In this document: in pieces, positions 41,168-64,000 of the stretch | Numbering within the stretch: the first letter of the stretch is position 1 | How the letters are laid out: the number at the start of each line of letters is the position of its first letter | Source: Asterias rubens | Taxonomy: Eukaryota | Reading direction: 5' to 3' | Length of the DNA: 64,000 nucleotides | NCBI RefSeq assembly: GCF_902459465.1 | Contig: NC_047083.1 | Location: forward strand, 3,286,001-3,350,000 | Translations under genes and position numbers: made by a program | Notes under the pieces: model-generated | What the model saw: the letters and a program-made list of their open reading frames with translations, nothing else | The model's database searches: none | What the model was told of the DNA's origin: nothing

Positions 41168-42166
41168 TTTTTAGCTGTTTCGTAGCGCTAGCTGTTTCGT
41201 AGCGCAGCGCAGCGAAACAGCTATTGTTTTTGTTCGGTTTTATTTGGTTGTTTCAAGATTATTCAGTACTCGCATTTTTTTGCATGGTTCCTAAAATTAA
41301 AGAGCAATTGCAATGAAACTTTCAGTGATGAAGTGCATTGGTGCAAGGAGGGTCCTAAAAGAAACTCGTCATGATGACGTTTATCACCGGTCACGTGACG
41401 TCATCTTAAAGGTGTTTTATTTAAATCTTTGAAAATCTATATCAAATCAACGACAAGAGACCGTAGCTTTCTGTTAACGGGACTGGGTAGGGATTAATTG
41501 GGTCTTCATTTTATTTCATGTGCGTGACCTCACATGACCTCTACTTCCGGTCGAAACTGGCCAAAAACGGTAGTGCCCTGTAACTCAAAAGTGGTAACAC
41601 TTACGAAGTTGCTTTGGACGTAAGTGTCTAGCGAGGGTGGGCAGTTCAAAAAAAGTTTGATGACGTCATAAATTGCAACAGCGCCCTCTAGTGGCAGGTT
41701 GAAATTTCTTCAAAATGGACTTTCACTTTAAATCACTTTAAATTGTACACACACGTTTACTGTCTGGCAGGCATCATATGTGTTAAGTTTCAGATCAATA
41801 ACGTCATCGGGAGTCACGTGACGCGGTATTAAAGGTGCACTTTTTGAAGTCGTATAACTCCCGGAGTGATAATGCGACTTTGTTGAAACTTGGTAGGTTG
41901 TTAGACATTGGCAAGTTCTTGTGAATTATGTGATGACGTTATAATGACGTCATCACATGATTTCTTACGATATTTTTCATTTGTTGCACCTTTAACTCAT
42001 TAATTGCTAACTGTACATGGTATAATCTAAATTATTTTGTTAAGTAGCCAGGATTGGTCATAACTGCTTTGTTTATTAAAATGTCAATTTCAGATGAGAA
42101 ATTCGAAAATGTTATTAACGAAACAGCTCTGCATTTGTGCACAAATGCAATCAGGTCTAAGTTTTT
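41168..42166 (+). mobile_element. Helentron-associated non-autonomous element (HINE/DINE-1-like)
   Basis: 5' TAGCTGTTTCG...CGAAACAGCTA inverted pair, 3' sub-terminal CGAAACAGCT (42119-28), hairpin TGCATTTGT-GC-ACAAATGCA and T-rich end. Confidence 0.7.
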
Positions 42167-52158: not shown

Positions 52159-53598
52159 AACTGTGCGCACACTTTTATTATCAAGCCGTTCTAGACTTGG
52201 TTCAACACCCCTCCCGAAACTAATAATCTTCCCATGATCCATCGTTAAAAGAGGGCGCACTCTCATCAAAACAGATGTTTCTCAGGGTGATGGGGGTTCA
52301 AGGCTGATGGCGCCCTCTATTGGCAACTCTATCAGCGTGATACATGTATATGCGAGTAAAGCTTTTTGGAAAATCAACAGGAGCGTCTTGAACCAAGACT
52401 AGCATATTGGACGGCTAGCAAGCTTTTAGTGGATTGGGTCCTACTGAACAGTGCAGGATCCAATAATTTTGAAAAGGAATAACATGGAGATAACAGGTGT
52501 TAGTTGCAAGATGAAAGGATGTTTTTATTTAGCTTCTTTCTTCACTGGAGCTTTCCCATGAAGGTACGAACACCATGCCTGACGTACTATTTTAATAATG
52601 CAACCATCATTAAACTAAAGCCAACAGGGCCAAAATTATGGCACTGCTGCTGACGGTTAATATATGTGCTCAGAACCATTGACAAAATAAAATAAAAAAA
52701 ACATGATAAAGAGAGTGCTGTGGCACATAATTTGTAGCGCCATGAATTGGTGCTCAGTTTTACAAAGACAAAGAGTAAAATACGTAAAATTACATTAAAA
52801 ACATCAATACTTATTATAACATGAATATTAATACATAAACTGTAGCATTTCTACTGTGTGCAGTGCGAGTCGTATGACAAAAAGGCAGGAGATGCAATTC
52901 ATTATACATGTAATAACTTCATTTTAGCTTGTTACAAAACAAATGAGCTATTTTTCATGCATGTCTGGAAATTTACACTCAGCAGCCAGTGATTTAGCGC
53001 GAGGCCAGTGAACTTAAAGACCGGACAACTCAGGAGTTCTTGTGTTATTGAGTAATAATACCCAACACCCATTTTCAATTGATCTACTCACTGTGTTTCT
53101 AGTCTTGTGAAGGCTTTGAGCTACAAAGCCCTGCAGTTTTGTGGTTGTTTTTCCCAAGTTCAAGCCTTGCCATAACACATTGTATACTTTGTACCTATGC
53201 ATTTTGTATCATTGATGCAAAACATGTGCCATGGCAGCGAAAAGGGGAGGATGGTTAAAAGCCAAAATATTTAAGTAAAAGGGGCTGTGTTATCATGATA
53301 AAAGCAGGCCAGTGGAGGAACATAGAATTTGATGAATTATCAGTCCGCTACTGCATGCACTTGCTCTCCCTCAGTACCAAATCTACGGAGGGTAAGCGCT
53401 GAATTCTGGTGATCGTAAGCGCAGAATTCAGCGTTAAGCAGAGCCATGAAATTGGGCACTGTTATGATCCTGACAGGACAGCCCCTTTAAATTGCTTTAA
53501 ACATCTTGCTTTATCGCTGATTAATCTTTTGATGTGAATCTATCAATGAACACATTTCCTCTAAAGCGCTGGGTCACCTAGTCTCACGTTCAAGCAGT

Positions 53599-56500
53599 CT
53601 AATCACGATCGTATGAGTCTCTTCTTGGAGCTGGACTGTGGTATGACCTGGAACGGCTGGAATGAAGGCAGGTACAAACAGTACGCATAAATTTTCATTG
53701 AAACCTTTAAACCTTTTTTTTCTCCAGTAAACTTGGAGGCAACCAACTGCGCTCCATGCAAAAGGAACACTTGGAATATTTCAATGTATGCATCAGTTCA
53801 CCTCTAATGATATTACATAATCCTTTAATCCTTAGGTCCAAAGACATCGCTCCACCAGGCAATGCACCTCAATGGAAAGCACAATTATAGAACAATAGAC
53901 CCATCTATGAAACATACTAATTACATTCACGCATACATACAGACCCTATTGGTTGGCAAACGCCAAAGAGATATGCACTCAGCAGAGGGGGGGGGGGGGG
54001 GGTCCAGGGGGGTCCCAAGAGCCATGTTTTTTACACTTAAGCCAAATATTGTACATGCTTTCATGGATGTGTACAAGTTATGGGATTCTAGGTGTACATG
54101 TATATGTATTTGGAATTGCTGTAACGTCGATTATGCACGCACAAGCCAATTTCCTGCTAACCGGTGAAATATGCAAGCTGAAACGCAGAATTTCCTGCTT
54201 CCGCAAGCAACGACTATTTGCTTACGGTAAGCAGAGCCATGAGATTGGGCCCAGATGTTTTACCAAGTCTATGTATACATGAGTGTTGGGAAAAACTAAA
54301 TCATGGATTTACAACCTACCTTCGGCTTCGGCTGCGACTACGGCTACGGGAACGATAACTCTTGTAGGAATTATTGCGACGAGTGTCGTAGGGGGACCTG
54401 CAAAAAGACAAAGAGGTACATTATATTCCAACAAAAAAATTATAATAATATTATTGAGAAACAAGGGATCAAATTATGAAAAAGGGTTTTGAGTCACTCT
54501 CGTTATTCAAATTTTTTTTCTAGCTGAGCAGCATTGAGAAGGGAACCGGTCAGAAAAGATTGTACATTTACATGACATTATGGCTGGTGACTTGAAGGAT
54601 TTTGGTACTTTTTCAAAATGTTCACAGATTTGCATTAAACTAACAGGGTTTAAAGATAATGATATTGGAAAGCTTCAAATATTATTTACTAAGGTTCGGT
54701 AGGAAAGAAATTTGTTTTACTCATTTCTCAAAAACTACAGCACCTCAGAAAGTAAAATTTCAAGTGAAGCTTTCTACTATCATTATCTTCAAACTGTGTA
54801 AGTTTAATGTTAATCTGTGGACACTGTGTTTTGTGTTAGGAAAAAGTGCATGACCCTTTAAAGACGATGCTCAGCAACAATTTTCTGTACTTAGCAAGTT
54901 TGTGTGCTTTGCCAGCTCTATGAAACTGACCCCAGGACAAGAACAAAGCTAAGTTATAGAAACAAAACTTTATTAAAAAGGAAGTGAAAGGTCACATTCA
55001 ATAACATTATGTACGCATTCCAATGTCTGCATGGAAGTGCATGGACAAATTTACAAATCTCTAGCTTCATATCATTAAACATACACCTCTTCGCAAATAC
55101 CCATTATGTCATCGCTAACTGTTGAATGAGGTGCATGCTGGTCTAGCTAGGGATCAAACTTAATTGCAAGCTAGACCAGCATGCACATCGTTCCACACCT
55201 ACCGCATTTGTACCAAGTATTTGCGATAAGGTTTATGGTCTAAATTGCCATGTGTATTCAATACCCTCCCAGTGCAAATAATATGGTCTCATCCAAAAAA
55301 TCTTGTTTAATTCTGAGTATAAAATAGGTTTTACACCAATATGTGATACAAATATATCTTTTTTTTTTTAATTAGAAATGTTTGATTACTCAACACTTTC
55401 ACTACCAATTTCTTAATATTCTTTTACACATTCCCGATGAGCGTACCTTACAGTGAGAGCTCATGTAGCAAATACTAAATATCTGCCTCGCAAAGTTGTG
55501 GTAGCCTAGCAGAAAAACCAGAATGCTAGAGGCAAGTAAACTGAGCACCTCGCAGATGTACGCACTTGCGGAAACTAGACGAGTCTGAATGTCTCGCAGT
55601 AAAGCTATCTTAGGCTACTGGTTTGCACTAGATGTGTGATATAACTTGTGGATAGCTTGTGGACAACTAGCATAAACTGGATAGCTTGATGTTGTTGAGT
55701 AGCAAAGGCTAGTGGTTTGAACTAGATGGGAGATATAACTTGTGGATAACTTGTGGGCAAATAGCAGATATTGTTTAGCTTGCCGAGTAGCATAGGCTAG
55801 TGGTTTGAACTTGATGATTGACATGATCTGTGGTAACTTGTGGACAACTAGCAGAAAACGGATAGGTTGCCGAGTAGCAAAGGCTAGTGGTTTGAACTAG
55901 GTGGGTGATACAACTTGTGGACAAATAGCGGAAACCAGATAGTTTGCTGTTGTTCGGTAGCGAAGGCTAGTGGTTTGAACTGGATGGACGAGATAACTCG
56001 TGGACATAATAGCAGAAACCGGATAGCTTTCTGAGCAGCAGAGGCTAGTGGTTTGAACCAGTGGGTTGTCCTAACTTGCCGATACATGAATACATGTAGC
56101 TAGTCGCAGTATTTTACGGCCGCAATGAGAAAGCTTGCAGGAATCAATTCCCCTGCTTAAGAGTTAGTTACGATATCCTGCAAATTAAAGTAAAATAGGT
56201 AGATTTAAGTGTATACAATCATTTAACTAATTGCGGTTTTACCATCCTTGCAGGTAAAACACAAACTAAAAATACTTTGAGATTGAATTGAAGGCCAGTG
56301 ATTTTAGCGTTGTCCCATCTGGTGGTCGACTGATTTAAAATGCAAACAAAAAAGACAAGATCAAAGGAGAGAAAGAGTAATTAGTGAATGAGGCAGGCTA
56401 AAATGGGGGATATCTGTGAAATAAATGCAGGCCGGATACTTCATGGAGGCAAAGAAGGCGATTGCCTCCATGCCCCCTTGTCATTATCTTGGGGCCCTTG

Positions 56501-57512
56501 AAAAGCTCCAGAAGAAATTTAAGATTTCCTCGTAGGGTGCCCTTTACCAAGATGCCTTTGCCCTTCTAAAAACAGGGCATTACACGCTGAAAATGCATCA
56601 TTTAATTAAAGATTACCTGGAGCGAGATCGTCTACGCTTGTCGTGAGAGTTGTGCGGGCAATCTCGTGCATAATGGCCACGTTTGCCGCACTCGTAGCAT
56701 TTATCATCGTTGAAAGAACGACGCTGCTGGAAACGACTGCCGCCACCACGGTCACCACTGTAACTGTAACCGCCACCACCACCACTTGAACGTCTACTGC
56801 CGCCCCCCCTTTCACGATCACGGCCACGACGTTTTTCACCGGTAGCATGCTCGACCTCAATACGTCTCCCACAGAGAGAACTGTTGTTGAATAAAATAAA
56901 ATGTATCTTTATAAGCACTGGAGACTTTTGGTAAACACTTAAAATAACTGTTAGCATAAAAACTCACTCAGTAACCAGCAATGGAGAGCTGTAATAGCAT
57001 AAAACATTGCGGGAAAGAAGTAATTTCTAACTTAAGTATTTAAAAATATGTTTACGATCTAAAAACAATTTTCTCTTTATAGAGACAACATTTATATTCA
57101 TTGCCTTTTTTCAAATTTCTCAAAAACTACAGCACCTGGGCAACCAATATTTCATGGGAAGCTTTCTACCATCATTATCTTCAAACCAAGCAAGTTTAAC
57201 GACAATCTTTGGCCATAGTGTTTTGTGTCCTACAAAAAGTTCTCATAACCCATTGACACTAATTCTTTGTCAATGATATAAACATTATGGGGTCTGAACA
57301 TACGTGTCATTGAGTCCTCTGATGGCTTGGCTGGCATCCCCAGGGTTTTCAAATTCGACGAAGGCAAAGCCTGGCGGATTCCTAGCGACCCAAACATTTG
57401 TCAATGCTCCGTAGGTACTGAATGAATCTTCGATGTCACGGCGATTGGCATCGTCTCCAAGGTTACCAACGTACACCTTGCAGGAAAGCGTTGAATCTCC
57501 ATAGCGTGACAT
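53599..57512 (-). CDS. SRSF7: Serine/arginine-rich splicing factor 7-like (RRM + CCHC Zn knuckle + RS domain)
   Basis: Exons 57304-57512, 56617-56880, 54320-54397, 53599-53656; all introns phase 2. [49 protein letters not shown]. An acceptor at 57526 before the ATG implies an upstream non-coding exon (donor AAG/GTAAGG at 59109). Confidence 0.92.
55447..56329 (-). other. Candidate poison (premature-stop) cassette exon in SRSF7-like intron 2
   Basis: CTAAT branch point, long pyrimidine tract and CAG acceptor at 56330; an in-frame TAG follows after about 21 codons. A second acceptor at 56178 gives an immediate TAA. Donor AAG/GTACGC at 55447. Confidence 0.55.
55611..56060 (-). repeat. Six degenerate 78-94 nt units with core GTTCAAACCACTAGCC and a repeated TCCACAAGTT motif
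   Basis: Cores begin (+ strand) at about 55613, 55707, 55795, 55882, 55965 and 56043. Confidence 0.85.
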
Positions 57513-57960
57513 AGTGAAGGAATCTCTGCAATGCAAATAACAAGAGGGTTAAAAAGTACCAATCATTGACATCTTGGGCCAAGACAAATAAATGTGAAAA
57601 AGCAAGATGGCGGCCGACGGTTTTGCTGTTTCGAGATAATTTTTTCATGAGAAAAAAACTTAATTTTTATTCCTAAATATGACCTAAAACTTTCGCAAAT
57701 TATCTTTGAACTGATATTTTACATGCTTCTTTTGTGGATTTTAAATGTATATTGGAGGAGTTGACGGCGAGTTGACAGCGCAAGTGAGTTGACGGCGAGT
57801 TGACGGCAAGTAGTAGGACCCCAAGTGTGGCTAAGGACGGTCGCAATAAATACCGACAATTCACGACCCCTCACGACAACTCACGACAACAATGTTTAAA
57901 TGCACTTTAACAAAACATTTGAACATAAGTCAACCGTTAAATATATACACAAGAGTCATA

Positions 57961-58447
57961 TGCATCTAAATCACTTTTAAACTGTTGAAAATTTTGTTCT
58001 TTTAACTGTAAAAAAGGTGTTTTTTACCCCGAATTTAGTAGCAAACGGAAATATTCGCCATGTTGTCTTCCGACGTACTTGGACGATTCTATAACACCGC
58101 AGGGGGCATGGGTAATTTCTGAGGGCTGAGTTGTATTTTTTCTTTTTGGTTTTAGCTGCTGTTTTTTTTCTTTCTTGTTAGTAACTAAGCAGACACTCTG
58201 GAATTCAATAAAAGGGAAGATTTAAATATAGTATTTTTAAAAACTCTATGGGGACTATGAGAGGCACATAAAATGGTAAATAATCATCTTGCATATGGTA
58301 TCACCCCTGCGGTGTAATGAAATCGTCCAATTACGTCGAAAGACAACATGGCGGATATTTCCGTTTGCTACTAAATTCGGGTAAAAAACACCTTTTTTAC
58401 AGTTAAAAATACAAATTTTTCAACAGTTTGAAAGTGATTTGGGTGCA
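57961..58447. repeat. Long inverted repeat (~145-bp arms, ~200-bp spacer), MITE-like
   Basis: 57961-58105 is the reverse complement of about 58304-58447. Confidence 0.85.
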
Positions 58448-59108
58448 TCCAAATTTGTTGGAATCTTAATTAATTATTTATTAACAAAACACAATTCCAG
58501 CTAACCAAAAGGATAACTTTCCATATGGCGCCACGGACAACTTTCCGTATGGCGCCACCACTTTTTCACTCATTTTTACAAAAAGGGATATCTCATTGAG
58601 GTAAATAAGATACTATATTATTTCATATCGAATGAAAAAGTGGTGGCGCCATACGGAAACTTTTCCGCCCGGTTTGAAAAAAAGGGATATCTCATTGAGG
58701 TAAATTAGATACTATTTTTTATTTCATTTTGAATGAAAAAGTGGTGGCGCCATACGGAAACTTTTCCACCCAAAATACACAAAGATTTGTCTATAAATAA
58801 AAAGAAAACCACGATGTAAAAAAGCCACGCTGTAAAAAACCCCAGTCAGGCCTGTTCAAGATCGATAAAAAGCCAAGCGCGCATACGAAGTTGATTTGGC
58901 TTTTTCACATCCAAGTCCAGTTCAGTATTTTGGGCTAGATTTAATGCTTATTTACACAAATTCCAATGATGCTCATCCCTTAATATTTCTTTATTATTAC
59001 GACAACACACTATACTTTTACAATTCAATGGTAAACTATCAAGGTTAAGCTCGTTTCTATCTTTAGAATTATTATAAAATTTTGACTTTTTCGCTGTCTC
59101 GACCTTAC

Positions 59109-59403
59109 CTTTTCCACACAATCTCCAAAGGTCGCGTGTTGTTGAATGGAAAAGAACAGCCGATTGGAACTGGTGTACTAACCAATACTTCGTTCAGTGA
59201 CTGTATTTTGCCTATTCAAAAATCGATGCTGCCGTGCACCAGCTAAATATAATTTTCGATGTTTCTAAGTTGGCCGCTAGAGGGCGGCATTATTTCACAC
59301 AGTATTAGCTACCAGCAACCTGCGTGCGTGTGGACAAGCTTTTTTTCTGGCAGAAAAAGGGGCCGAGTGTTGCCAATATTCTGTTTAATTCAAAGACCGT
59401 GAG
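59109..59403. promoter_or_regulatory. Candidate bidirectional promoter with the two non-coding first exons of the SR genes
   Basis: Outward-facing canonical donors at 59109 (-) and 59403 (+), a CCAAT box at 59163-59167 (-), and a locally GC-richer segment. Transcription start sites are inferred only. Confidence 0.6.
59274..59287 (+). promoter_or_regulatory. CTCF-like motif CCGCTAGAGGGCGG
   Basis: Matches the CTCF core consensus CCRSYAGRKGGCRS; motif match only. Confidence 0.45.
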
Positions 59404-60652
59404 GTGAGTTGAGGAGTTCTGTAGTATTAAAGATATATGATAGAAGGGATTCAGCTACATAAACTAAGCGTAACCATCCCATGAACAGAAATAAAACCAC
59501 TCGTGAACTGCGTGTTTGTGGTGTCACTGTCGGGGGTTTCTCCATCATTGGGCAATTTGGTTAAATTGTGTTCATGGTGCGCAAACCAATTCTGCACAGT
59601 CTTACAATTGCGCAAAAATTTCGGCATTTTACGCATTACATTGCTGTACTATCAGTAAATTGCGCAAAATATTCCTGCACGATAGGCGAATTTTACAAAC
59701 TGGGCACAATTTCGTAAGGTTTATCGCCATTCAGAACCGCAATGCATTGTGGGAAGGCATGTGGGGCAGTTTGCTATGGGGTGTATGTTGTCACGCACGA
59801 CTCGCGCACGCATCATCTATAGACCTTATATGCATTGACGTCATCCAGCTGCCATCTTTGAGGTCAAACGGTGACGAAACAATCAAAACGCACATAGATT
59901 GACCAATGAACAATCTCCTTTTGACCTCAATGCGGGGGCGCCGAACTGAAATGACGTCATGTGCATAAAATAAGGTCTATATCTTTGTCAACCATTGTCA
60001 ACAGCATCTCTTGATATTTTGCTATTTGCGATATCATGGCACTGCTCATCGCCAAATTCTCGGCTTACAAAGTTACATGTACTAACGTCACGATCATCAT
60101 AAAATAGCCGTCATTAATTAACTGCTAAGAAAGGTACAAGCACTAATTTTCTGGATAGCTGGCTGGGGCCGGTGGGTCATTATATGTAGAATGTAGACGC
60201 TGAGGTAGTAAGTAAGCTTGGAACCTTGACATTGCTCCTGCAAAAGTGCTGATTCCTTGCTTTTTATGCTACAGTACAATGAACAGATGGGCCCTGCACT
60301 ATATTATTTAATCTGTAAAGATCGCGCTATTGACCCATTTCACCTGACGTCATCATCAGAATAATCTTGGATGCGCCATTTTGGTGGTCAATGTCACGGT
60401 GTGTTATTCAGTGAAGTGCGCATTTTTAGGTGACGTGGCGTTTACACGTAAGCCTATTGACCACCAACATGGTGAGCGTGGCAGCAGCCGCCGCGTGTGA
60501 CGCGCGTGCAAGGGGTCTTTAGTTTAACTGGGAATTTTGGCTCGTGTTATTACAATACAAAGCAAGCGCCAAAATTCTGTGAGAGCCATGAAAATAAGCA
60601 ATGGCCAAATTTAATACAACATAGTATTCTTTACAGATTTTAAAATTTCGCC

Positions 60653-61710
60653 ATGGGGAGATACAGCAGTGATGACGATAATAATAGTGATGACGAACGG
60701 GAGCGTACTCGCATCTACATTGGTGACATCAACTCGGAGACGACCCGGACCGATCTGGAGAGAATTTTCAAGAAGTTTGGCTCGCTGTTTGAGGTCTGGC
60801 TTGCCCGTTACCCACCGCTGTTTGCGTTTGTCGCCTTCAAGAAAAGGCGAGATGCTGAGGATGCTGTCCGTGAGATGAACGGGGAGTAAGTTGAGAATGT
60901 TATGCCTATGTCTTAATCATAATAATAATAAAAATGGCTTTCTTGTAAAGCGAGCATATCTGTCACTCAGTGGCGATCAAGGTGCTTTAATATACAGTAC
61001 TTTCCTGCTTCATACAACACAGTACATGGCACCATGTGATGGTTTACAAGGTGCTGGGGCGCAACATGCTGCCAATTAAACCAGGAACACCAGGGCCAAC
61101 CCCTGACGTCTCTTTTCGATAAGTGCACTGCCATCAATTTCACCAAACTCTTCCTAACTAAAGATGAATCTTACATGTAGGACTTAGGACAAGCTTATTT
61201 CCGTATCCATGTTGGGACACAATGGACCCATCCTAAGTAAGAACGAGTTACTCGTCCTAACTCGAGATAGGATTAATCCTAGCACTTCGTGAAACAAATG
61301 GGCTGCTGGGCTACACAACACACGGGACCAACGGCTTTACAGGCCAACTCAAGGATGAAGCATCATGGTTAAGTTTCTTGGTTAAGGACACAAGTGTCAC
61401 GACTGGGCCGAACCCACACTCTGCTGATCAGACTTTTCTGAGAGAGGGTTTTACAATGGATTTTATTGCTTTGATGAAATCAACCCAAGTGCCTTTTAAA
61501 ACGTCCTCTGTTTTCTCCTACACCCCTCAGAACAATTAATGGGAGTCGAGTACAGGTCAATATCGCTCGTCCTCGTAACCGCGGACGGACCAGCTTTGGT
61601 CGTTCTAGTTTCCACGATCCGGAGATCCGATGCTACCACTGTCAGGAACGAGGGCATATCGCTCGCCATTGCACCAAATTCACATCCGGGTATCGGCGCC
61701 ATTTCAGCAG
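60653..61710 (+). CDS. Second SRSF3/SRSF7-family (Rsf1-like) RRM + Zn-knuckle protein; 3' exons lie beyond the window
   Basis: Exons 60653-60885 (TRIYIGDI..VWLARYPPLFAFVAF..DAEDAVREMNG) and 61531-61710 (SRVQVNIARPR..CYHCQERGHIARHC). Intron positions and phases match the SRSF7-like gene. Acceptor at 60636 before the ATG; non-coding exon donor GAG/GTGAGT at 59403. Confidence 0.88.
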
Positions 61711-62868
61711 GTATGTACACGTGTACCTTGTATGGCCTTATAGTATTACATTATTCAGTTGTTCACCTTGAGAGTAAACTTGAAGAGTCTGGGTACTGTT
61801 TGTAGAACACAAAACACAGTGTCCACAGATTCACATTAAAGGGTCTATGTAACTTTTGTAGGACAAAAAAACACAATGTCCACAGATTTACACTAAACTA
61901 ACACAGTTTGAAGATAATGATAGTAGAAAGCTTCCCTGAAAATATTACATGCTGAGGTGCTGTAGTGTTTGGGAAATGAGTAAAACCATGTCATGAAAAT
62001 AATTTTCGTCTCATGAGACGAAAATTATTTTAATCATTTACAAACGGAATTTCATGACATTGTTTTACTCATTTCTCAAAAACTACAGCACCTCAGTAAG
62101 TAATATTTGAAGGGAAGCTTTCCACTATCAATTTCCACTATCAGTAACTTCAGAGGGAGCCGTTTCTCACAATGATTTACTATCAACAGCTCCCCATTAC
62201 TCGTTAAACAAGTAAGGTTTTATGCTAATATTTATTTTGAGTAATTACCAGTAGTGTCCACTGCCTTTAAACTCACACAGTTTGAAAATGATGATGGTGG
62301 AAAGCTTCCCTTAAAATATTACTTACTGAGGTGCTGTAGTTTTTGAGAAATGAGGAAAACAAGTCACGCAAATAATGTTTGTACTTAAAGATGAAAATTA
62401 CTTTGCATGTAGAACATAATATTTTCGTACCATTGTTTTACTCATTTCTCAAAAAAATACAGCACTTCGGCTAGGAATGATTCAAGGTAAGCTATCTACT
62501 ACCATTATCTTCAAAGGGGTATAAGTATAATGTAAATTAATGTGTGGACGTGTTTTGTGTTACAAAAAGTACCCAAATCCTTTAAATAAACCCATCATGC
62601 GAATCCAATATGTTCAATCCATAGCAAAGTTTGTCAAAATTTAAACATTTGCACCATTTGATGGCAATTTACACCATTTGATGATACATGTACGTTATCA
62701 CGATCAAGTACATGTAGGTAGACCCTTGCAGGTTTTACATTCACAAGATTTCGGGTTTGAATCGTACCAAGCATACGCTGATTTCACAATGACTTGAACA
62801 AGTAATGCTGTCTAGTTTCTGAATCACAATCTAATGCACTAGATACAGTAGTCAGAAATAGACTTTAA

Positions 62869-63187
62869 AGCCATTATACACTTTTGGTAAACAGTATTGT
62901 CCAAGTCCCACACTTCGTGTATCACAACTTGTATATAAAACAACAAACCTGTGAAAATTTAGGCTCAATCAGTCATCGGTGTCGGGAGAAAATAACGGGA
63001 AAACCCACTCTTGTTTCCGCGCGTTTCGCCGTGTCATGACATGTGTTTAAAATAAATCTGTAATTCTCGCTAACGAGAATTTAAATTGTTTTAAAGTATT
63101 TCACCATTACCTTCTGTAAACCCTGTAAACTATTTGTACATCTGTGAACTTTTTTTGTTTTTTCTGTACCGAAAGGGTCCAATGGCT
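62869..63187. mobile_element. Kolobok-type MITE family E (TIR AGCCATTGGACAC); other copies at ~18030-18390 and ~50472-50825
   Basis: TTAA-flanked with shared internal sequence. Confidence 0.85.
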
Positions 63188-63525
63188 TTAAATCTTTGTT
63201 TATTGTAATGTATAAGAGTGATTACCAGCTTGGCGTTTGTGTCCCCCTGTACATTTTGGTGCTTTGCCAAGTTCCCTTGTTGGAAAGAGCACCTAGACAC
63301 AAACACAAAAATCAAAACAAAATACACACTGTACTACCAAAGGGTTTGGGACTAAGGTACAACACCTACATGTACATGTACGTAACTGTCTTTTTGTTGA
63401 ATAATTATAACAGGCTTACATAATACGTGTCATGTTTCATACCTTGCTTTTTCCATAGCAAATATTTTGAAGTGACCTTAATTTATATTTTCATAAATGC
63501 TGATATTTTATACATAATTTTATAG

Positions 63526-63804
63526 GCTGGTGTGTGGGCTTTTTGTTGATGGTAACCAATGGCAACGGTGTGAGTGGATATTTGGGAAAATATGTAAAAA
63601 GTGGCCGGCCATGTTAAGAGTGTGGGTATGGTGACCCAAAGTAGTATGGTGATTCTGATTGGTAGAATCAGCCACGAGAGGTTAGTTCTCCACTGTGATT
63701 GGTTGGGAGCTAAGGACGAGCCCTGTGATTGGTTGGTTGTGTGTTGGGAGTCTTGTTCCCCCGCGGTGATCTTTTTGCAAAGAGTGTGTGTTTAAAAACT
63801 GATG
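63526..63804 (+). other. Candidate GU-rich poison cassette exon of the Rsf1-like gene
   Basis: Acceptor TTTTATAG/ at 63525, in-frame TGA at 63632-63634, donor ATG/GTAAGT at 63804. Base composition shifts at both edges. Confidence 0.55.
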
Positions 63805-64000
63805 GTAAGTTTGTGTTCAAATCATTTGGTTGATTTGTTGGTATTTTTTTGTTCATTTGGAATTTTCGTTTGTCTTTTTTACATTAACTGAATGCACTTA
63901 AAAGTGAAGGTTTCGTTTTTCAGTACTGTACATTGTATTTATAAACCGAACAAAGTTCACTGAAAATAAAAGAAATTGAGCCTAAAGCCATAAACATAAA

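Follow-up and report, generated by a model that had tools for sequence, protein, structure and literature searches.

Bidirectional gene pairs are common in animal genomes, and in some of them, such as COL4A1/COL4A2 and histone H2A/H2B, related genes are joined whose products are partners in one complex and which are thought to be duplicates. The poison exons of the vertebrate SR-protein genes SRSF3 (SRp20) and SRSF7 (9G8) are ultraconserved. To our knowledge these two genes lie on different chromosomes and neither is paired with another SR gene, and we know of no zinc knuckle in the Drosophila protein Rsf1. Rsf1 carries a Gly/Arg/Ser domain, the 'GRS domain' (PMC4274639), and the SRSF3 and SRSF7 poison exons have been reviewed (PMC11791180, PMC12632421). 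SR proteins are dose-dependent and regulate one another, so it is of practical interest, and still open, how cells balance the amounts of one against another. An SR pair on one promoter, each gene with its own stop cassette, would suit the study of coupled transcription and separate post-transcriptional trimming. Our literature searches turned up no account of two SR genes placed head to head, which does not prove that there is none. Divergent gene pairs and poison exons in SR genes are familiar phenomena, and our finding on the pair described below is descriptive.

We analyzed a 64,000-nucleotide stretch of Asterias rubens DNA (the window) in which gene A on the minus strand and gene B on the plus strand encode proteins of 202 and 189 aa, each with an RRM, a CCHC knuckle and an RS tail. 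The first-pass annotation of this DNA had described two SR-family genes standing head to head, and the domain content and opposite strands bore this out. Our overall reading, which we consider probable, is that A and B are divergent SR genes on one promoter, co-expressed as housekeeping genes and each self-limited by a stop cassette, and that they form an old pair and are not recent duplicates. Pfam searches detected RRM_1 at 4.2e-16 in A and 2e-15 in B, and zf-CCHC at 2.3e-07 in A and 5.8e-05 in B, in both as the single knuckle that SRSF7-type proteins have between RRM and RS tail. Gene A has the RRM, CCHC knuckle and RS tail in the order of vertebrate SRSF7, and the best matches among solved structures for the RRMs of both A and B were SRSF3 and SRSF7. 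A protein atlas search returned generic SRSF7 and Rbp1 clusters only. The RS tail of A spans 58 aa (59% R+S, 20 RS/SR dipeptides) and that of B 64 aa (53% R+S, 17 RS/SR dipeptides). The definition of SR proteins that Manley and Krainer are said to have given in 2010 reportedly comprises one or two N-terminal RRMs, a C-terminal RS domain and splicing activity, the RS domain being at least 50 aa long, with an RS content above 40% and RS/SR repeats that are consecutive. The predicted A and B proteins both have an RRM and an RS domain of this kind. NCBI names gene B 'RSZ21A-like' or 'SRSF7-like', and the annotated protein P0001 is 100% identical to its first coding exon.

Every structural claim of the first-pass annotation on the two genes agreed with the sequence, including acceptors 13-16 nt before the ATG and phase-2 introns at the same RRM position and after the zinc knuckle. 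The ATG of gene A lies at 57512 (-), 13 nt downstream of an acceptor that starts the exon at 57525. This first coding exon (57304..57525) carries the RRM as far as its phase-2 intron, at 57304. The knuckle exon, read from 56880 to 56617 on the minus strand, completes the RRM, continues through a Gly-rich linker into the CCHC knuckle and also ends in phase 2; in RNA it is a single contiguous piece (56615-56880) whose loose end at 56615 matches the start of the next exon. The RS exon of A occupies 54320..54397 (-), on evidence that includes the loose end of an X12 contig, and the last coding stretch with the stop codon of the 202-aa product lies at 53599..53656 (-), in an exon that continues as 3' UTR. 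Gene B has its ATG at 60653 (+), 16 nt after the acceptor that starts the exon at 60637. Its first coding exon (60637..60885) encodes an acidic N-terminus and the part of the RRM that precedes a phase-2 intron, which falls at the same aligned RRM position as in A, and its knuckle exon (61531..61710, +) encodes the RRM end and the CCHC knuckle and ends in phase 2. Gene B was followed to the end of the window, and the remainder of the gene lies beyond it. The joint 61710>62463, seen in run X12, was considered as a poison exon and ruled out: it leads into a repeat-derived, in-frame alternative coding exon of 24 nt (62463..62486, +) that gives isoform X2 the peptide STSARNDS (P0151 versus P0001).

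The RNA contigs came from three independent studies of A. rubens, with four runs in all, one of them from a second species; they are unstranded, and their depth in the four contig sets is not a measure of expression. The coding joints 56880>57304 (A) and 60885>61531 (B) were found in all four runs, the second species included. Non-coding first exons, which the first-pass annotation could only predict, were seen in these contigs for both genes. The joint 57525>59109 of gene A, with CT..AC ends, occurred in runs X12 and X1, and the joint 59403>60637 of gene B, with GT..AG ends, in runs X10, X12 and X1. The first donors are thus at 59109 (-) for A and 59403 (+) for B, and the distance of 294 bp given earlier is confirmed by the RNA joints. 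The donor of A reads AAG/GTAAGG and is the sole strong minus-strand donor within 58900-59600. At its minimum extent the first exon of A covers 59109..59272 (-), at least 164 nt, all spanned by an X12 contig, and its 5' end may be further right. That of B covers at least 90 nt (59314..59403, +), as given by the joint 59403>60637, with 88 letters on the exon-1 side in X12. Intron 1 of A (57526..59108, -) is filled with repeats, among them a MITE-like inverted repeat (57960-58448) and 24-nt palindromic units (58511-58771). Intron 1 of B (59404..60636, +), delimited by the joints, contains interspersed repeats with very high depth in the RNA depth table.

The 5' ends of the A and B transcripts leave a gap of at most 41 bp (59273..59313), the core of the shared promoter, delimited by contig ends that bound the start sites and are not themselves mapped start sites. 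On our reading A and B are divergent from one compact TATA-less promoter, with 5' ends in RNA at most 41 bp apart. Of the ~300-bp promoter proposed earlier, the notion of a compact shared promoter stood, but the 294 bp between the donors are no promoter and turned out to be mostly the two first exons. Of the co-transcribed pair proposed there, divergent transcription was likewise upheld, as the RNA contigs place both SR-type genes on this one promoter. Lying on opposite strands, with no intervening gene and with 5' ends within 1 kb of each other, A and B form a bidirectional pair in the usual sense. The RNA depth ranks of the two genes agree in the four runs, an agreement that mostly reflects run size. 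With COL4A1/COL4A2 and H2A/H2B the starfish pair shares divergent related genes, a distance of well under 1 kb from start site to start site and a long-lived order; it differs from them in that A and B come from anciently separate clades and have no known physical partnership. This is a real yet fairly ordinary two-way promoter, and what is unusual is that both partners are SR proteins.

A CTCF-like motif, which the first-pass annotation had noticed midway between the donors, is indeed present as the 15-mer CCGCTAGAGGGCGGC at 59274..59288 (+), inside the gap, with one mismatch to CCASYAGRKGGCRSY (14/15 consensus positions). The whole window holds 3 CTCF-like sites against 0.15 expected. In a sea star and a sea urchin, no motif ranks above that of CTCF in constantly open chromatin (PMC13317027), and by analogy the presence of such a motif at the A/B promoter would fit a housekeeping promoter. 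No CTCF-like site at one mismatch or fewer was found in the intergenic DNA of Acanthaster or Patiria, and a block conserved between these two species, which holds GAGGGCGCT, shares only the GAGGGCG core with the motif. When the promoter and first exons of A. rubens were compared by blastn with the intergenic DNA of Patiria and Acanthaster, no alignable sequence appeared, and we therefore make no claim of promoter sequence conservation.

A short non-coding exon opens each gene, and we propose that transcription diverges from the shared compact promoter. By sharing it, the A and B proteins would probably be co-expressed as housekeeping genes. Like vertebrate SRSF3 and SRSF7, each gene may also hold down its own output by means of a conserved cassette with stops, presumably by NMD feedback. 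The candidate poison exon of gene A has its acceptor at 56177 (-), in the intron after the knuckle exon. Acanthaster has both this acceptor (TTGCAG/GAYATC) and a 31-nt block in conserved form, and entry in phase 2 leads to a stop after 3 codons. The candidate in gene B (279 nt, 63526..63804, +), also in the intron after the knuckle exon, is the sole alignable non-coding block; neither of its splice sites differs among three starfish, and in-frame stops occur in it in all three species. The comparison thus points to conserved stop-bearing cassettes in both post-knuckle introns, strongly for B and more weakly for A. The first-pass annotation had given each gene a poison exon and its own NMD feedback; the conserved cassettes with stops are there, and separate feedback of A and B would fit them. 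The cassettes resemble the vertebrate ones in being stop-bearing and in lying in a downstream intron, and differ in being conserved among starfish only, as far as compared.

The head-to-head order was retained in Patiria miniata (L001) and Acanthaster planci (L002), which belong to a superorder other than that of A. rubens (Valvatacea versus Forcipulatacea). This synteny supports the old linkage suggested earlier and dates the pair to no later than the divergence of these superorders. Acceptors lie 12-24 nt before the ATG in all three starfish species. It could be argued that the adjacency is functionless, two housekeeping genes with core promoters of their own having come to abut, and that their order persists in starfish only for want of space for a harmless breakpoint in a 40-bp spacer. 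The unalignable promoter DNA, a distance between the start codons of A and B that ranges between 2.7 and 8.7 kb depending on the species, and the general frequency of bidirectional pairs are all in keeping with this idea. It is nevertheless unlikely in our view, since chance would seldom make neighbours of two among a handful of family members, the pair has persisted across two superorders, and the GAGGGCGCT-core block conserved between Acanthaster and Patiria is flanked by divergent predicted donors. The proposed coupling of A and B under a shared promoter is testable in Patiria because its embryos can be manipulated. Within 10 kb of the SRSF7-like genes checked in Amphiura, Lytechinus variegatus and Strongylocentrotus we found no B-type gene.

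The first-pass annotation had taken the pair for an old inverted duplication, possibly of an activator and a repressor. In its full form this would mean an inverted tandem duplication followed by specialisation, A as a splicing activator and B as an Rsf1-like repressor, and the head-to-head arrangement together with the same domain order and phase-2 introns in A and B would agree with it. The tree weakened this explanation. A word search with the gene A knuckle exon returned two proteins only, and we searched with the Patiria orthologue in its place. In a tree of ~170 columns, with long branches in the B clade and Drosophila Rsf1 left out, gene A fell inside the SRSF3/SRSF7/Rbp1/x16 clade (35 rows, support 95/81) as sister to the starfish C paralogues and a Lytechinus gene (97/80). 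Gene B fell outside the clade of the vertebrate proteins, in a separate 17-row clade (100/98) with leech, copepod, rotifer and nematode proteins. An AU test rejected starfish A and B as a single clade (p 0.005), and the nearest paralogues of A are on other scaffolds. The phylogeny with SRSF3, SRSF7 and Rbp1 suggested in the first-pass annotation thus put A among them and B in a separate old clade, and the two genes are neither sisters nor a recent duplicate pair. The mirror architecture did not survive as a sign of duplication either. All the family members that we checked, a leech B-type gene among them, have the phase-2 RRM intron; being family-wide it is ancestral, so it gives no argument for an inverted duplication, and Acanthaster gene A has one extra intron. 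B-type genes also occur unpaired: around those of Helobdella (leech) and Lepeophtheirus (copepod), no SR gene lies within 10 kb. Either A and B were brought together later, in the echinoderm lineage, or theirs is a very old linkage that has been lost elsewhere.

The repressor part of the proposal relied on Drosophila Rsf1, a single-RRM protein related to the SRSF3/7 type, and on the claim that it antagonises SR proteins. Nematode members of the B clade, those of Trichinella, were named after Rsf1 by their depositors. Gene B differs from Rsf1, which we compared by description only, in keeping a full RS tail and a knuckle, and nothing that we found supports contrasting activator and repressor roles. 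Moreover, among the splicing events that Rsf1 shares with other SR proteins, 97.9% change in the same direction under both (PMC4274639). Duplication followed by such specialisation is very unlikely on this evidence, and we retain the reading of an old pair of non-sister SR genes.

Gene B belongs to a separate old bilaterian clade characterised by an RRM and a knuckle with an RS-rich or acidic N-terminal extension. A tentative suggestion, which we regard as possible rather than probable, is that B represents an unrecognised old bilaterian SR subfamily, with an RS tail besides these features, without vertebrate and seemingly without sea urchin members. In starfish a 40-bp shared promoter would have tied it to an SRSF7-like gene, giving a fixed ratio of the two proteins and perhaps cross-regulation through the poison exons. 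The starfish linkage would then have a rough age of ~200 million years. 'SRSF7-like' labels in invertebrates conceal at least two old clades. The protostome B-type proteins that group with B (100/98) include Helobdella XP_009025919.1, Lepeophtheirus 'SFRS7' CAB4066956.1 and Seison KAI3382570.1. They differ from the starfish gene in that those of Helobdella and Lepeophtheirus have no adjoining SRSF7-like gene and the copepod gene is intronless. In common with B they begin with Met-Gly-Arg, after which comes an N-terminal extension that is RS-rich or acidic; they also have a residue other than Gly in the RNP1 motif PPxFAF and an ARPR stretch before the knuckle.

Two divergently oriented genes were identified at 54000-64000 of the window from a reading of the sequence and the ORF list. 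On the minus strand, gene A has its start codon at 57512, preceded 13 nt upstream by an acceptor (exon start 57525). Its first coding exon closes two bases into a codon, at 57304, the second covers 56880-56617 and ends in phase 2, and two RS exons follow (54397-54320 and from 53656); spliced together, the exons give a 202-aa product. A second AG lies 9 nt downstream of the last acceptor with the frame preserved (53647-53656), a possible alternative acceptor that would remove three residues. Gene B, on the plus strand, starts at 60653 with an acceptor 16 nt upstream (exon start 60637), and its coding exons end in phase 2 at 60885 and at 61710 (second exon, 61531-61710). An exhaustive profile search with its first coding exon returned a single 100% match, the 189-aa protein P0001, which a word search identified as Asterias rubens 'RSZ21A-like isoform X3'; P0151 is isoform X2. 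Pfam detected RRM_1 and zf-CCHC in both proteins alike, and SRSF3 and SRSF7 were the best solved-structure matches for both RRMs. The two RRMs are 41% identical and the knuckles are alignable. Since each predicted protein joins an RRM to an Arg/Ser-rich tail after the knuckle (58 aa with 59% Arg+Ser in A; 64 aa with 53% in B), both qualify as SR proteins under the usual definition.

We mapped contigs from four public RNA runs, three from separate studies of one species (organism A) and one from a second species (organism B), onto 56550-62549. The coding joints of both genes were found in 4/4 runs, the joint 57525>59109 with minus-strand GT..AG ends in two runs, and the GT..AG joint 59403>60637 in three. 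The non-coding first exons proposed in the first-pass annotation are thus real; its acceptors 13-16 nt before the ATGs agree with the sequence, and the RNA joints confirm that the first donors are 294 bp apart. Unspliced contigs across the donors reached a few per cent of the spliced-contig depth. The same annotation had placed a ~300-bp promoter between the donors. Closely spaced divergent 5' ends were indeed seen, but the 294 bp are mostly first-exon sequence: a contig starting at the gene A donor extends to 59272, and another, carrying 88 letters of the gene B first exon, reaches back to 59314. The observed 5' ends are at most 41 bp apart; as the contigs carry no strand information and a contig end is not a mapped start site, this is an upper bound rather than a measurement. 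The gene A contig of organism B (run X3) extends 25 nt beyond acceptor 57525 into intron 1 (57526-57550), which may reflect either intron retention or, in that species, another 5' exon.

The gap between the 5' ends is occupied by a CTCF-like 15-mer (59274-59288); the first reading had noticed a CTCF-like motif midway between the donors. The window holds three CTCF-like sites against 0.15 expected; one is at 41680-41694 (0 mismatches) and one at 52309-52323 (1 mismatch), downstream of the gene A stop codon and probably within or just past its 3' UTR. The CTCF motif is reported to rank first among the motifs of constantly open chromatin in both a sea star and a sea urchin (PMC13317027), so such a motif at a housekeeping promoter fits the phylum.

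Gene B orthologues of Acanthaster planci and Patiria miniata are 74-80% identical to it, and identity drops to about 45% outside the three starfish. In both the Patiria (L001) and Acanthaster (L002) loci, an opposite-strand gene with RRM and knuckle lies immediately upstream of the B orthologue, and tblastn identified it as the gene A orthologue, so that the head-to-head linkage is kept. The start codons are 8.7 kb apart in Patiria, 2.7 kb in Acanthaster and 3.1 kb in A. rubens. Since Asterias belongs to Forcipulatacea and the other two to Valvatacea, the pair is at least as old as the split between these groups. An acceptor lies 12-24 nt before each ATG in 3/3 starfish, so non-coding first exons are probably common to all three. 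The promoter DNA of A. rubens did not align with the intergenic DNA of Patiria or Acanthaster, and the full CTCF consensus was not found in the A-B intergenic regions of the latter two. A single 50-nt block with GAGGGCGCT at its core is common to these two, and predicted divergent donors 300-570 bp apart flank it; the same donor scan on A. rubens returned only the two RNA-confirmed donors. Together these predictions suggest, without proving, that the promoter layout is kept among starfish.

An old inverted duplication had been proposed for the pair. In trees of about 50 family members and about 170 columns, gene A fell within a clade of vertebrate SRSF3 and SRSF7, insect Rbp1 and x16 and other echinoderm genes (95/81), its sister being a second starfish paralogue on other scaffolds with a Lytechinus gene (97/80). 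Gene B fell in a separate 17-row clade (100/98) with leech, salmon louse, rotifer and nematode proteins, one group of which carries the depositor name 'Rsf1'. Members of this clade begin with Met-Gly-Arg, are extended at the N-terminus by an RS-rich or acidic stretch, carry a residue other than glycine within the PPxFAF motif and have an ARPR stretch ahead of the knuckle. The label 'SRSF7-like' spans two old clades, a point added by this analysis. A single clade of starfish A and B was rejected by the AU test (p 0.005, to be read with care since the group was chosen once a first tree had been seen and branches in the B clade are long). The separate clades and this test argue against A and B as a duplicate pair. 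The phase-2 RRM intron occurs at the same position in A, B, urchin, brittle-star and leech genes and one further B-type contig; this makes it an old family trait, uninformative on a local inversion. The mirror-image architecture also holds only in part: both genes have the phase-2 introns, but in Acanthaster the RRM-end and knuckle parts of gene A, one RNA-confirmed exon in A. rubens, lie ~1 kb apart with an intron between (L002:5570-6797), so the mirror is inexact in relatives.

No SR neighbour was found within 10 kb of B-type genes in Helobdella and Lepeophtheirus, nor any B-type sequence beside the SRSF7-like genes examined in one brittle star and two sea urchins. A B-type first exon that shares 66-70% identity with starfish B and encodes an RS-rich N-terminal extension lies on a 1421-nt contig (L005, GCA_013332995.1); the tree places this sequence as the sister of starfish B (95/84), so it may come from a non-asteroid echinoderm. 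Two animal RRM and knuckle proteins whose annotation is SRSF7-like or uncharacterised, P0228 (Saccoglossus) and P0216 (Pomacea), clustered with plant RS2Z proteins (99/96) and not with animal SRSF3/7; both served as part of the tree outgroup, which makes this grouping provisional. Strongylocentrotus purpuratus has two near-identical SRSF7-like genes in same-strand tandem about 10 kb apart (L008:369-15367), with RRM exons differing at few residues. Echinoderm SR paralogues seem to occur in clusters, head to tail in this case.

The suspected poison exon after the knuckle has conserved, stop-bearing candidates in both genes. In gene B, the intron after the knuckle exon holds the only non-coding block alignable among the three starfish. 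Within this block lies a 279-nt candidate exon (63526-63804) with invariant acceptor and donor and, read in phase 2, in-frame stops in 3/3 starfish; in each it follows the knuckle exon and precedes the next RS exon. In the corresponding gene A intron, the acceptor at 56177 and a block of 31 nt are shared with Acanthaster, and the candidate cassette has a stop three codons in. The joint 61710>62463 (one run) was rejected as evidence of a poison exon: it leads into a 24-nt coding exon, in frame, that belongs to isoform X2. That exon is repeat-derived, from one copy of the SINE-like repeats at 61750-62350, where RNA contig depth reaches about two million.

Promoter sharing and conserved cassettes fit a scheme, both steps of which we infer, in which a common promoter would couple transcription of A and B and the cassettes would allow each to limit itself separately by NMD. 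Self-limitation by NMD is known for vertebrate SR genes, and we propose the starfish genes to be alike. The suggested activator and repressor roles found no support. Gene B encodes a complete SR protein, and Drosophila Rsf1 is reported to share its direction of action with other SR proteins in nearly all cases (PMC4274639). In the literature searched, no head-to-head SR gene pair was described. Both genes are already annotated by NCBI; bidirectional pairs and SR poison exons are each known, and this locus adds a new case of both.

Intron 1 of gene A contains a MITE-like element (57960-58448) whose inverted repeats form two pairs of arms, 70-95 nt long and 87-91% complementary. A 24-nt unit with GTGGCGCCA recurs at 58511-58771 in direct and inverted orientation, at a spacing of about 100 nt; RNA contig depth over these copies is very high, so they are an abundant repeat family.
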